Source: Blastocladiella emersonii ATCC 22665 (lineage: Eukaryota > Fungi > Blastocladiomycota). From it: a stretch of DNA of 64,000 nucleotides. The notes below the pieces were generated by a model. It was not told where the DNA came from and made no database searches. It was given only the letters and a program-made list of their open reading frames with translations. Of this stretch, positions 20,177-43,667 are shown piece after piece; position 1 is the stretch's first letter, and each line of letters begins with the position of its first letter. Location: NCBI GenBank assembly GCA_025594325.1, contig JANHCV010000014.1, positions 806,001 through 870,000 of the forward strand. Direction: 5' to 3'. Made by a program: the position numbers and the translations under genes.

Positions 20177-21056
20177 TTGATACAGAGCTATTATTCGAAT
20201 CGGTCTATCGGAATGCCTATCAGGGTGAGCACGTGATTCTATATTGAGGCGCAGCGCGTCTGGCGGCGCGAATCAGGCGCGACCACTTGCGCCAACGTTT
20301 GCGCGAACCGAGGCCCTGGTTTGCGCATACATGGGGTCTCGATGGTGCCCAACATCGGCCCCCTTTGCGCAAACCCTCGCGCAACGGGTCGCGCAAGGGG
20401 GGTTCGCGCAAGGGTTTGCGCCAACCGATGCGCAAAGGACCAATGGCTGGGAGCCGTTTCGGCGATGGCGTCCCCTCCGGACCACGCGTCGCCTTGACAT
20501 GCGCTTGCGAGCCCAAACTTGGCTTACCGTTCGTAATCGTAAGAAGAGCAGCTCGATTTTAACTACAAGGCCGAGTTTCCATGGCGAGCAAGAGGTTATC
20601 GTGAGCCGGGAGTAGGGTCGAACGGCGAGTCAGCATTCTGACGCCATCAACTGTCACAGTTGACTGAACAGGACGCGCCGCTCGGCAAAAAAGGACCCAT
20701 TTGCGATATTTGAGCATTAATCTGTGATACACATCAATAAAGGGACCACTGACTTTCTTATTGGCGCACGGCGACGAGGCGAGAGCGCTACACGCGGAAG
20801 CGCAAGCTAGAGAGACTCATTGCCGTCAGACCGCTCGCGGCATGAGGTAGCCGGTGCAGCAGCAAACGCGAGCCGTGCGTGCTGAGCTCCGAACGTTAGG
20901 CACCGAGTGTAACGCTTCGCTGAGGCGTACACGGCGGAACGGAAACGATCGCCAACGCCACCAAAGAAAGACTCAAGTCCAGCAGAATGGCGTTTGGATG
21001 CTAACAATACATGTTTGACGCCAAATCAGGCGCGTGATTATCGTCAAGCCGACGGC

Positions 21057-21799
21057 TTAGTTGTTGGAGCCGTAGTACAGGTCGCCGTAATCGCCGAGGC
21101 CGGGGATAATGTACTTGCGGTCGTCGAGACGCTCGTCGATCTGGGCCGTGACGAGCTTGAGCTTGGGGAACCGCGACACGATGGCGTTGATCCCCTCGGG
21201 GACGGTCAGCAGGTTGAGGAACAGGATGTGGTCCTCGCGGACGCCGTGCTCGAGCAGCACCTCGATCGCCTTGATCGCCGACCCGCCCGTGGCGAGCATC
21301 GGGTCGAGCAGCAGCACGTACCGCGACGCGATGTCCTGCGGCAGCTTCTGGTAGTAGAGCGACGGCTGCGCCGTCTCCTCGTCGCGCTGGATCAGGATCT
21401 TGCCGATGCGCACGTCGCGGCAGCACTCGCGCAGGCCCTTCTCCATGGCCTCGCCCGCCCGGATGATCGGGACCCCGCAGATCTTGCCCTGGAACGCCAC
21501 GCCCTCGTACGTCGCGCCCGTCGGCGTGACCACCGTCTTCTCGACGACGGGGAGGTAGTTGAGGCCCTCCTCGACGAGCAGGCGGACTGTTTCTGGGTCA
21601 GTACGGTTCGACGGCGCAGCACCCAGTGCAACGTACTCAGGCGGTCGCTGTAGAAGATGAAATCGGAGCGCGACGTGTCCTTGTTGCGGATGGTCGTCAT
21701 GAGGGCGCGCAGCTGCGCCGTCTGCGGCAGCAGGTGCACGTTGGGCGGGAGCGGCTGGCCGGCGGTGTAGGCGGTCTTTTGGGGGAGGGTTAGGTTCAT
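21057..21799 (-). CDS. FUR1: Uracil phosphoribosyltransferase, copy 1
   Basis: Mirror of 42875-43617; intron 21587-21636; motifs [46 protein letters not shown]. Confidence 0.95.
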
Positions 21800-21982
21800 G
21801 GAGAGTGCATTGCATTGACTTGTGGGCGGGTTACCATCTTCAGTGGGGGCAGGTTGTATTGACGAGGGAGAGAGAGCGGGCGAGAGCTGCGGGGTGAGGC
21901 TGAGTTCGGGCGGGCGGGCGGTGGCTCGAGCGACCGAGCGAAGCGAATTGTGCGGGGAAGCCAAACCTGCGCTCAGCCGCAC

Positions 21983-24979
21983 TCACGAGGGCGAGTGGCT
22001 TGGACCGCGAGACACTTCCGTCTCATTGAAGGGGTGCACGAGCGCACGCACCAGCTCGCGCGTATCCGTCGCCATCTTGTCGCGGTACACGCGCCCGCGG
22101 TAGGTCAGCGGGACCGCCGCCAACCCGCCCGCGGAGTGCACGAGCGGCACCGCGTCGACCGCGTCCAGCGCCTTGACGACGCGGGAATCGTGCTCGTGCA
22201 GCCGCGCCGTGATCGCCGCCCGCGCCGCCGCCTCGGGAAGCCGCGCGTCGGACCGGTCCGTCCAGAACCGCAGCGGCTGCGACGCGCGGTACTCGAACGC
22301 GATCCACTCGCCCAGCACCCGCTCGCGCGCGAGGACGGCGGTCGCCGCGGTCTCCCAGCACCGCACGGCAGCGAGCTGGGTGTCGAGCGGCTCACGCCCG
22401 TACACGACGGCGAGGCGCAGGCGGTCCGAGAGCGTGAACCCGAGCCGGAACGCGACCCGGTCGAACCGCTTGGCGAGCGACTCGGCGTCGATGGTCTCAT
22501 TGTTGTCGGCTTCGGTGGGTTCCGTCGGGTCCTCGAGCTCGGGATCCTCATCGTGGGGTGAGGCGGGACGCGAAGCAGCGGAGGCGGAACGGCGGCGGCG
22601 GCGGACCTGCAGCTTGACGCGCCGTTCGCGCCCGCGGTGCACCTCGTCGTGCAGGTCATCGTCGCCCGACCCGGACCCGACGCTCGTGTCGTCCTCGTCG
22701 TCGTCGTACCCGGTCCCAGCACGCACGGGCGACGGCAGCGGCGACATGACCTCGAGCGCGCGCGTGCTCCACTCGCCGCGCGCGAACGGCACCGCCTCCT
22801 CCTCCTCTCCACCACCGTCGCCCAGATCAGAGTCGGACTCGGAGCCCGACACCCCCAAATTCTCCACACAGGCGTCACCCGCCGAGACCGCCGCCGACAC
22901 GGGCCGCTGTCCCGACCCGCCCATGATGAAATCGTTGCGGAACCGGCCCGCGAACGCGCGGTACCCGTCGGCCGTGAGCCGCGACTTGCGCACGCGGTAC
23001 GTCGTCTGCGGAATGTACCCGCCGAAATTGTACCGCGAGTTTTCGGGCTTCGACGTCGGCACGCGCGCCATGGCCAGCGCGCGGTGCCGCGCAAACTCGT
23101 CGGCCGTGACGTGCAGCTCGTGCGCCGAGACGTGCCGCGGCATCATCTGGATCCGGTGCTGGATCGTGCGGGTCTCGGTGACGGTGCCGCGGGTCCCGTT
23201 CGTCGCGACCGACGCGCGGGATAAACCGCGGTCCTCGGTGCCCGGAATGAGCGAAGCGGCCAGCGAGTCGGCGGGGATTGCAGGGAACCCGCGCGCCGAG
23301 GGCGACTCGCCCAGCAGCAGCTGCCCGCCCGTCACCGACTGCATGATCTCGTCGAACAGCTCCTCGACCTCCTGCGCGCGCGACAGCTGGTTGTCGAGGT
23401 CGAGGTCGCGGCCCGTGTTTGCAGGGGAGCGGTGCCGGTCCGCGTCGTCGGCCGACTCGTCGTTGATCCAGTGCACCATCGACAGCACGTCTGACACGAT
23501 ACGCCCGTGCGGCTCGCGGTGCGACAGCCGAGGTGGGCCGATGCCTGTGATGAGCGACTTGGGTGTGGTGGTGCGTGGTGTGTCGTCGTCGTTGGTGGAT
23601 GAAGGGAACGAGTGAAGGCGGACGCTAGGCGGTGCAATGGCGTTGACGCTGCGGCGGTCGCGCATCTCGGCCTCGCTCGCGGGTGCCGGAAACGACGAGG
23701 ACGCTGACGGGTCTGTCGCGGGTGCGGCAGCCTGAGCTTGAGCGGACGCGAGTTGGGCGGCGACAGATTGCGCTGCACCAGCAGTCACGGTCCGTGGCTC
23801 AGTGAGGTGCTTCTCGGCCTTGACGGCGAGGCGGTACAGCTCGCCCGAGTCCGAGTGCGTGGCACCAGCCCCAGCCGCACCGACAGGACGGCGACGCTGC
23901 ATGGCGTGCTCGAGGTACCGCGGCTGCGGGGTCGGGGCGAGGGCCACGTACTCGCGGTCCGAGTGCCGCAGAAACGACGCCATGAGCAGCGGGTCCTCGG
24001 GGATCGGCTCCTGCTCGGGCACCTCGAGGTCGGCAAAATCGGACGTGGGAGCACCGTCACCCGAAGCAGGTGCGGTAAAGTCGAGGGTCGCGGCGCGAGG
24101 GAAGCGCGGGTTGTAGCGGCGCCGCTGCGGCGACGACGCGGCCTGCGTACGAGCACCGCCGACGGTGGAGCGGACGCGGACAGCAGCCTCAGGAGACAAT
24201 GCGCGCAAACCCTCGCGCGAGTAGCCCGCCTCGGACAACCGCGTCTGCAGAGCGTGCTGCGCGCGCAGCTCGCGCTGGACCTCGGCCGTGATCCGCCGCT
24301 TCTCGTGCAGCAGCGCGACGCCGCGCGGCATGGGCGTCTCGAGCTGCGACAGCTGGACGTGCGCCAGCAGGTGCCGCTGCGCGTGGTCGGCGATCGCGGC
24401 CGCGTCGACGCGCTCGGGCGGGACGGGCGCGGGCGGCGGCGACGTCGTACGCCGGATCGCGGCGCCCTGCGCGCTCAGCCACGCCAGGTGCACGGGGCGG
24501 ATCCCTCTGACCAAATCGCGGCGAAAGGCGTGCAGCGTGCGCTCGACGGTCGGCGCGTGCGGCAGCGCGGCCTGCAGGCAGTGGCCGACGTACAGGTCGC
24601 GGCACCGGTGCAGCGCATTGTCGCGCACCGCCCGTAAGTTGTCGGCGAGCGCGCGCACCGTGGCCGGGTCGCGCAGCGGGCGGCGCAGCGGCTTCACGTC
24701 GGCCGAGAAGCGCAGCGTGAACTCGGCGAGGAAGGCGTCGCGCTACGGTTCGTGGGTTGGTGATTAGTGGCGAGTCGAGTGCGGTGACTGAACAGAAAGA
24801 CGCACAAACTGGGCGCGGTCGGCGGGCGGCAGCCACTCGACGGCGTCAAAGTCGGAGAGCAGGTCCTGCGCGAGCGCGGCGATGCGCGCCTCCGTGTCGT
24901 CGTCGCGGTTGTTGCTTTTCGGGATGGTACCGGTTGCTTGAGGTGCGGCAGAAGACGACGACGGTCGCTTCACCACCAT
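21983..24979 (-). CDS. CCDC87: CCDC87-like protein (MAP65/ASE1-related C-terminal domain), copy 1
   Basis: Mirror of 39695-42691. Confidence 0.6.
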
Positions 24980-42691: not shown

Positions 42692-42874
42692 GTGCGGCTG
42701 AGCGCAGGTTTGGCTTCCCCGCACAATTCGCTTCGCTCGGTCGCTCGAGCCACCGCCCGCCCGCCCGAACTCAGCCTCACCCCGCAGCTCTCGCCCGCTC
42801 TCTCTCCCTCGTCAATACAACCTGCCCCCACTGAAGATGGTAACCCGCCCACAAGTCAATGCAATGCACTCTCC

Positions 42875-43617
42875 ATGAACCTAACCCTCCCCCAAAAGAC
42901 CGCCTACACCGCCGGCCAGCCGCTCCCGCCCAACGTGCACCTGCTGCCGCAGACGGCGCAGCTGCGCGCCCTCATGACGACCATCCGCAACAAGGACACG
43001 TCGCGCTCCGATTTCATCTTCTACAGCGACCGCCTGAGTACGTTGCACTGGGTGCTGCGCCGTCGAACCGTACTGACCCAGAAACAGTCCGCCTGCTCGT
43101 CGAGGAGGGCCTCAACTACCTCCCCGTCGTCGAGAAGACGGTGGTCACGCCGACGGGCGCGACGTACGAGGGCGTGGCGTTCCAGGGCAAGATCTGCGGG
43201 GTCCCGATCATCCGGGCGGGCGAGGCCATGGAGAAGGGCCTGCGCGAGTGCTGCCGCGACGTGCGCATCGGCAAGATCCTGATCCAGCGCGACGAGGAGA
43301 CGGCGCAGCCGTCGCTCTACTACCAGAAGCTGCCGCAGGACATCGCGTCGCGGTACGTGCTGCTGCTCGACCCGATGCTCGCCACGGGCGGGTCGGCGAT
43401 CAAGGCGATCGAGGTGCTGCTCGAGCACGGCGTCCGCGAGGACCACATCCTGTTCCTCAACCTGCTGACCGTCCCCGAGGGGATCAACGCCATCGTGTCG
43501 CGGTTCCCCAAGCTCAAGCTCGTCACGGCCCAGATCGACGAGCGTCTCGACGACCGCAAGTACATTATCCCCGGCCTCGGCGATTACGGCGACCTGTACT
43601 ACGGCTCCAACAACTAA
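42875..43617 (+). CDS. FUR1: Uracil phosphoribosyltransferase, copy 2 (230 aa)
   Basis: Exons 42875-43037 and 43088-43617; the splice restores [18 protein letters not shown]; PRPP-binding loop [12 protein letters not shown]. Confidence 0.95.
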
Positions 43618-43667
43618 GCGTGTTTGATTGGGGGTAGGGGTAATACAGTCCTCTCGAGGGTTACAAT

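Follow-up and report, generated by a model that had tools for sequence, protein, structure and literature searches.

Palindromes on the Y and X chromosomes of primates undergo arm-to-arm gene conversion (Rozen et al. 2003, as cited in PMC5490193; PMC6790999), and intrachromosomal conversion is thought to maintain the identity of their arms. In asexual animals, 17 palindromes of Adineta vaga and 11 of Folsomia candida have been discussed as substrates of conversion (PMC5490193). A further route to inverted duplication, fold-back repair at imperfect inverted repeats, is documented in yeast, where repeats in long single-stranded DNA still interact at distances of up to 30 kb and with as much as 25% divergence (PMC10622511, PMC10164571). 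Here we describe a palindrome of the zoosporic fungus Blastocladiella emersonii ATCC 22665, located at positions 21055–43619 of a 64,000-nucleotide stretch (hereafter the window; G+C content 64%) of contig JANHCV010000014.1, of which it covers positions 806,001–870,000. A block of about 5.92 kb, carrying genes for tRNA-Trp and tRNA-Cys, a CCDC87-like gene and FUR1, is duplicated there in inverted orientation. The palindrome occupies 827–850 kb of the 1,254,856-bp contig and is thus interstitial. Structures of this type, inverted segmental duplications with a spacer, are already known.

The locus resembles the primate Y and X palindromes in having kilobase-scale, gene-bearing inverted arms of near-perfect identity, a unique spacer and genes present in two copies. 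It differs from them in scale, with arms of 5.9 kb as against tens of kilobases to megabases, and in setting, since it lies on a fungal non-sex chromosome and carries a housekeeping enzyme and tRNAs instead of testis gene families. Moreover, a role for conversion is suggested here by a single diverged tail of 37–46 nt (see below) and not by a comparison between species. With the palindromes of A. vaga and F. candida the locus shares the arrangement of a gene-bearing intrachromosomal palindrome, but the arms in those animals are collinear gene blocks with a wide range of synonymous divergence (Ks), unlike the letter-identical DNA found here (PMC5490193).

A search of the whole window for inverted repeats returned only one long pair, the two segments of 5,879 nt at 21055–26933 and 37741–43619, which are 100% complementary. 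Base-by-base comparison found 0 mismatches among the 5,879 nt, and ungapped similarity fell to chance directly beyond both ends of the arms. The initial annotation had described the arms as apparently identical, with every base and open reading frame (ORF) that had been checked mirrored, and the exact alignment bears this out. Besides the arms, blastn between the two halves of the window detected only the paired long terminal repeats (LTRs) of a retroelement and a single short match at the inner ends. The segments of the locus and the flanks used for comparison are as follows.

21055–26933, minus strand: left palindrome arm, 5,879 nt, genes read leftwards from the centre, without mismatch to the reverse complement of the right arm.
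26934–37740, no strand: spacer of 10,807 nt, comprising an unannotated stretch of 4.7 kb with lower GC, a chromovirus, a further 0.6 kb and a miniature inverted-repeat transposable element (MITE).
37741–43619, plus strand: right palindrome arm, 5,879 nt, matched without differences by a run contig over 39020–43619.
20473–21054, no strand: single-copy left flank, between the left arm and a multi-copy element at 16453–20472 that is bounded by terminal inverted repeats (TIRs).
43668–44810, minus strand: ZIP transporter gene H9P43_009414, the convergent single-copy right flank, used as depth control.

Perfectly identical arms are also what a duplicated assembly path would give, and we asked how well the structure is supported by reads. 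The source assembly was built by the La Jolla Assembler from PacBio HiFi reads of 10.5 kb mean length, followed by duplicate purging, manual refinement and Pilon polishing with short reads; it consists of 21 contigs with a total of 34.27 Mb and 10,031 genes (PMC9730499). Neither 'palindrom' nor 'inverted' occurs in the text of that paper. An artefact could consist of a single-copy block placed twice, a fold-back chimera, or two structural haplotypes joined in one path, and, besides the perfect identity, the purging and hand refinement of the assembly leave room for such an error. The read-level data were four public runs of a single sample (S1) in the form of k-mer contigs. The comparison spans 39020–45019, that is, most of the right arm and the single-copy ZIP flank, and bears on the outer junctions only, as k-mer contigs are unable to phase across an exact 5.9-kb repeat.

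In run X1, a single contig covered 39020–43619 with 0 differences and a word depth of 267.7, and it terminated exactly at 43619. Two distinct contigs began 30 nt within the arm: one, on the ZIP side, had a depth of 137.3, and the other, a 646-nt contig leading into the left flank, had a depth of 140.8. The ratio of arm to flank depth was therefore 1.9–1.95. The left-flank contig broke off within the terminal repeat of the neighbouring element (20450–20472), as would be expected if that element is multi-copy. In runs X2 and X3, the loose end at 43619 was the exact reverse complement of window positions 21025–21054, the left flank, so that two other runs attest this junction independently. Over the 4.6 kb of arm compared, none of the runs had any variant letters listed. 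Some joints listed for run X1 were discounted, as their sides were only 20–23 nt and lay within GC-rich repeats.

The double depth of the arm, together with two different outer junctions that each reach full single-copy depth in HiFi-derived contigs, excludes a collapsed or duplicated assembly path as well as two structural haplotypes threaded into one contig; the initial annotation had counted collapse and fold-back artefacts among the possible refutations. In addition, a unique 10.8-kb spacer and a MITE confined to one arm are untypical of chimeric reads, and the HiFi reads are on average longer than an arm. An artefact of any of these kinds is thus extremely improbable. The locus has kilobase-scale, near-identical inverted arms, a non-duplicated spacer, whose internal repeats are limited to the LTRs, the TIRs of the MITE and a short direct repeat spaced by 191 nt, and two arm copies with outer junctions of their own. 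We conclude that the palindrome is almost certainly a genuine chromosomal structure and that every genome copy in the sequenced culture contains both arms.

From the centre outward, each arm carries tRNA-Trp(CCA), tRNA-Cys(GCA), the CCDC87-like gene and the gene for uracil phosphoribosyltransferase (UPRTase), FUR1. All of these lie on the minus strand in the left arm and on the plus strand in the right arm, and their transcription is directed away from the centre.

26059–26131, minus strand, and 38543–38615, plus strand: tRNA-Trp(CCA), left and right copies, found by ARAGORN and Rfam.
25648–25722, minus strand, and 38952–39026, plus strand: tRNA-Cys(GCA), left and right copies, found by ARAGORN and Rfam.
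21983–25299, minus strand: CCDC87-like gene, left copy, with a long ORF at 21983–24697 and, in the public model, a first exon extending to 25299.
39375–42691, plus strand: CCDC87-like gene, right copy, the mirror of the left copy.
21057–21815, minus strand: UPRTase (FUR1) of uracil salvage, left copy, with coding blocks at about 21748–21629 and 21584–21060 and the stop codon TAA at 21057–21059.
42859–43617, plus strand: UPRTase (FUR1), right copy, facing the convergent ZIP ORF with 50 nt between the two stop codons.

This gene content and orientation agree with the initial annotation. FUR1 matched Pfam PF14681 (E 2e-68), and its second coding block was 83% identical to the enzyme of B. britannica. 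The arm tRNAs had Rfam scores of 62–68 bits. The CCDC87-like ORF (904 aa), described as a flagellar-type coiled-coil gene, had no match in a Pfam scan; it was 47% identical (E 1e-141) to a protein of Allomyces arbusculus named CCDC87 and 37% identical to a protein of B. britannica, and its Atlas feature score to animal CCDC87 clusters was 0.95. The same ORF gave a 98% match to the public protein H9P43_009413, which is encoded twice, in opposite orientations, on JANHCV010000014.1. In both arms, the public model of this protein (1,241 aa; 39375–43617 on the plus strand and 21057–25299 on the minus strand) splices the CCDC87-like gene onto FUR1, bypassing the stop codon of the CCDC87 ORF at 42689–42691. 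CCDC87 and FUR1 are separate proteins on different contigs in B. britannica and are annotated as separate, stand-alone proteins in Allomyces. H9P43_009413 is therefore probably a merged gene model, and the CCDC87-FUR1 fusion in the public annotation probably an annotation error. The third-codon-position G+C content (GC3) was considered as a signature of biased conversion and set aside, because the values of the arm genes (0.88–0.98) were not distinct from those of the ZIP gene (0.87) or the chromovirus pol ORF (0.91).

The initial annotation had noted eroded homology just inside the inner end. Homology is indeed present there, but the description needs refining: identity is interrupted by a MITE-like insertion of 138 bp, beyond which the arms continue as a short diverged tail.

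37603–37740, no strand: MITE-like insertion, 138 bp, in the right arm only and exactly at the limit of identity.
26934–26979, plus strand: left tail, the diverged continuation of the arm together with the empty site of the MITE.
37555–37600, minus strand: right tail, the diverged partner of 26934–26979.

The insertion has TIRs of about 37 nt that are 89% alike and is flanked by a duplicated CA dinucleotide, and the left arm contains a clean, uninterrupted empty site matching the insertion point. No further copy of the insertion was found within the 64-kb window. The tail begins exactly at the end of the MITE, after the duplicated CA, and nothing aligns past it. At a fixed offset, 31 of 37 positions were identical without gaps (chance P 5e-13), or 38 of 46 with one gap; the local alignment score was 45, as compared with a maximum of 31 among shuffles. 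All six mismatches lie beyond an initial stretch of 12 identical positions. Thus, the arms contain 0 differences in 5,879 nt and the tail 6 in 37 (Fisher p 4e-14).

This contrast can be accounted for by a duplication that is older than the perfect arms imply. Recurrent intrachromosomal recombination, in the form of arm-to-arm gene conversion, would keep the arms letter-identical. Insertion of the MITE into the right arm, about 40 nt short of its inner end, would have left too little homology beyond it for conversion, and the tail cut off in this way would have drifted to about 16% divergence as the outer 5,879 nt stayed identical. An insertion into one arm deep within the palindrome would be erased or copied across, and an insertion at the edge alone would persist; conversion would in this manner explain why the sole one-arm insertion stands precisely where identity ends. 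On this view, the original breakpoint would be the outer limit of identity, 2 nt beyond the FUR1 stop codon. In recombination-proficient fungi, conversion between kilobase-scale inverted repeats is expected to be far more frequent than mutation, and the identity of the arms therefore says little about their age. We favour this explanation, an old duplication held identical by arm-to-arm conversion, and regard its chances as about even.

Several observations weigh against it. The tail is just 37–46 nt long. Its mismatches comprise 2 transitions and 4 transversions, as unrelated sequence would, a number too small to weigh. A short diverged inverted repeat at an inner junction is the classic footprint of fold-back priming (PMC10622511, PMC10164571), and the outer edge is perfectly sharp, without an eroded margin, and thereby resembles a young breakpoint. 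The evidence of age comes from one strain and from this one tail, which is possibly a pre-existing repeat.

The same observations can be read as those of an inverted duplication that arose recently, through fold-back or template-switch repair, and whose arms are identical because they are young. A break would have occurred beside one member of a pre-existing inverted repeat of about 46 nt and 83% identity, whose partner lay 5.3 to 10.6 kb away; the 3′ end would have annealed to the partner and copied the 5.9-kb block, the new end would have been joined without homology, and the MITE would have arrived later by chance. Once the MITE is set aside, an inverted repeat of 46 nt and 83% identity does adjoin both arms, right at the inner junction. 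At the outer junction, which is blunt, there is neither homology nor microhomology, and the absence of differences over 5,879 nt would call for no conversion at all. The 2:4 ratio of transitions to transversions in the tail is, if anything, more like chance similarity. Like the yeast fold-back duplications (PMC10622511, PMC10164571), the locus has a single-copy spacer and a short imperfect inverted repeat precisely at the inner junction, as expected of this documented route.

On the other hand, a recent fold-back requires that the MITE inserted by chance inside a 13-nt window at the junction. Inverted repeats of such quality outside transposons are rare, with one other in the 64-kb window. The yeast cases used repeats of about 300 bp, or short ones very close together, and usually ended in dicentrics or terminal rearrangements; the repeat here has only about 46 nt and lies more than 5 kb from its partner. 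The present locus is interstitial, its outer flanks are intact at single-copy depth, and both flanks run into single-copy sequence with no sign of a terminal deletion or a resolved dicentric. Furthermore, conversion would be expected in a palindrome of these dimensions even soon after its origin. We consider a recent fold-back a real possibility, though we incline against it. As for the proposal of the initial annotation that an older duplication has been homogenised by conversion, the contrast between arms and tail fits it, but a recent fold-back explains that contrast almost as well.

We then turned to the outer boundary. Identity of the arms ends at 21055, 2 nt past the FUR1 stop codon, as had been annotated. 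On the basis of this boundary, the two copies of FUR1 must differ in their 3′ untranslated regions (UTRs), and their 3′ ends are predicted to be unrelated. The stop codon of the convergent ZIP ORF, at 43668–43670, is indeed 50 nt from that of the right FUR1 copy. To the left, the arm abuts a transposon zone, as originally described, with two TIR-bounded elements, the nearer of which is 582 nt away. When 1 kb of left flank was locally aligned with 1 kb of right flank, the score of 25 (shuffles, 23.6 ± 2.3) revealed no residual homology, and relaxed blastn of the outer flanks and tblastx of 1–21054 against 43620–64000 returned GC-rich noise only. The left flank ends in ...GCCGACG and the right flank begins with GTGTTTG, and the junction shows no homology, microhomology or target-site duplication. 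The outer boundary is thus a clean breakpoint and not an eroded edge.

Since the outer flanks lack residual homology although the inner tail is still about 84% identical, 21055/43619 is most simply taken as the original breakpoint of the duplication. The idea that a boundary coinciding with a stop codon is a sign of age finds no support in the same comparison: had erosion shifted the boundary inwards, similarity between the outer flanks would still be expected, as in the inner tail. A rough estimate from the numbers of genes and nucleotides in the assembly (10,031 and 34.27 Mb) places the chance of a breakpoint falling a few nucleotides outside a gene end well under 1% per boundary, and its position 2 nt after the FUR1 stop is a coincidence without explanation. 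Strong constraint on the C-terminus of FUR1 (GC3 0.98) could mask erosion at this edge.

The initial annotation had also taken the right copy, beside ZIP, as ancestral and the left copy as derived. For comparison we used the FUR1 loci of B. britannica, Allomyces macrogynus, Sorochytrium and Catenaria, the CCDC87 locus of B. britannica and the ZIP loci of B. britannica and Allomyces, and found no neighbours common to these loci and the window. In B. britannica, FUR1 lies by an Arf GTPase and an acyl-CoA oxidase, CCDC87 by RFC1 and ZIP by ORC5; in Allomyces, Sorochytrium and Catenaria the neighbours are different again. The 160 nt after the FUR1 stop codon of B. britannica contain no ZIP C-terminus. 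Compared with the 3′ flank of B. britannica FUR1, neither the left flank (p 0.02, a weak and heavily gapped match) nor the right flank (p 0.86) was convincing. Because the relatives show no synteny here, the ancestral arm cannot be told, and the assignment of the right copy as ancestral finds no support.

The spacer was examined for its own content. Its G+C content is 0.58–0.59, as compared with 0.66, and that of its left 4.7 kb is 0.59. Its largest recognisable component is a retroelement.

31654–36944, plus strand: Ty3/gypsy chromovirus with identical LTRs of 174 nt (TG..CA) and a 5-nt target duplication, AAGGT.

The chromovirus is apparently intact, with a gag ORF containing a zinc knuckle and a pol ORF of 1,286 aa, in which protease, reverse transcriptase, RNase H, integrase and a chromodomain follow in this order; the pol ORF is absent from the public annotation. 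Three consecutive ORFs of 188–364 aa lie on the minus strand at 27816–30389, with GC3 values of 0.60–0.68 as against 0.87–0.98 in native genes. They matched nothing in Pfam and nothing convincingly in Atlas, and the left 4.7 kb is devoid of public annotation. The Atlas leads pointing to a PIN-like identity of the 364-aa ORF were bacterial and sub-threshold (0.86) and were disregarded. These ORFs may represent a decayed gene, a foreign gene or no gene. Near the left end of the spacer there is a direct repeat of 86 nt, 91% identical, at 27134–27219 and 27325–27410 (spaced 191 nt).

A lower-GC spacer containing a chromovirus, with tRNA genes near the inner ends of both flanking arms, recalls a functional inverted-repeat device, either an invertible flip-flop cassette or a centromere-like core with tRNA-bearing inverted repeats as in S. 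pombe, and the architecture would permit inversion of the spacer. However, the arm genes all point outward, and inversion of the spacer would therefore alter no promoter-gene junction. No recognisable native gene resides in the spacer, given the low GC3 of its ORFs and the lack of Pfam matches and annotation, and the arm genes are ordinary housekeeping genes. We regard a functional device as improbable.

Long identical inverted repeats around an interior rich in transposable elements could also suggest a single large mobile element with 5.9-kb TIRs that captured host genes. Such an element would be expected to leave a target-site duplication, and the outer ends described above have none. Pfam scans revealed no transposase or other element gene besides the nested chromovirus. 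Furthermore, the arm depth corresponds to exactly two copies and hence leaves no further copies in the genome. There is scarcely any likelihood that the palindrome is a mobile element of this kind.

Some features of the surrounding DNA were also recorded. The TIR-bounded elements left of the arm lie at about 11748–15359 and at 16453–20472. In one of the two, the terminal repeat is perfect over 23 nt and the subterminal motifs are TTTGCGCAAA; the ends of the other are of the CACTGTG type, with GGTAAACAG as subterminal motifs. The larger ORFs of both gave no match to a Pfam transposase. Pfam scans of the left-flank ORFs found no family there, and the lone match in the scans of spacer and left flank was a RING finger at 8287–9360, farther left and outside the palindrome. 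On the right, the C-terminus annotated for ZIP in the public model (H9P43_009414, 314 aa), at about 43889, looks truncated, as the alignments with the Pfam Zip profile (up to position 319 of 323) and with the Allomyces homologue (query coverage 98%) continue to the ORF stop at 43668. Beside ZIP, two cobalamin-linked genes, MMADHC and MeaB (MMAA-like), stand side by side at 45382–47665, followed by a gene for RNA polymerase subunit N. The window that holds the identical inverted arms also contains a tandem direct duplication at 52856–56693, with a period of about 2.13–2.15 kb and copies 73–86% identical.

The 5.9-kb inverted repeat, perfect as it is, reflects the DNA of the organism and is no artefact of the published long-read fungal assembly. 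Through the duplication, the dose of FUR1, of the CCDC87-like gene and of the two tRNAs is doubled, and recombination between the arms could invert the spacer. The one-arm transposon at the limit of identity, and the diverged tail that follows it, make the locus a compact test case for gene conversion in nature. If conversion does maintain the arms, the one-arm MITE would mark the minimum homology needed by the conversion machinery, for which about 40 nt would be insufficient, and the MITE and the tail would together form a built-in clock by which the arms are far older than they appear.

To our knowledge, no sexual cycle is known in B. emersonii. One may speculate, by analogy, that the parallel with the palindromes of asexual animals is meaningful. 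On a broader scale, continuous arm-to-arm conversion might hold an entire set of gene-bearing palindromes of B. emersonii letter-identical, as a genome-wide fungal counterpart of the palindromes of the Y-chromosome and bdelloid types; we think this rather unlikely.

FUR1 is the usual target of counter-selection with 5-fluorouracil or 5-fluorocytosine, and B. emersonii is under development as a genetic model (PMC9730499). The presence of two identical copies of FUR1, possibly converting each other, will affect both the frequency of resistant mutants and the design of knock-outs in this organism.

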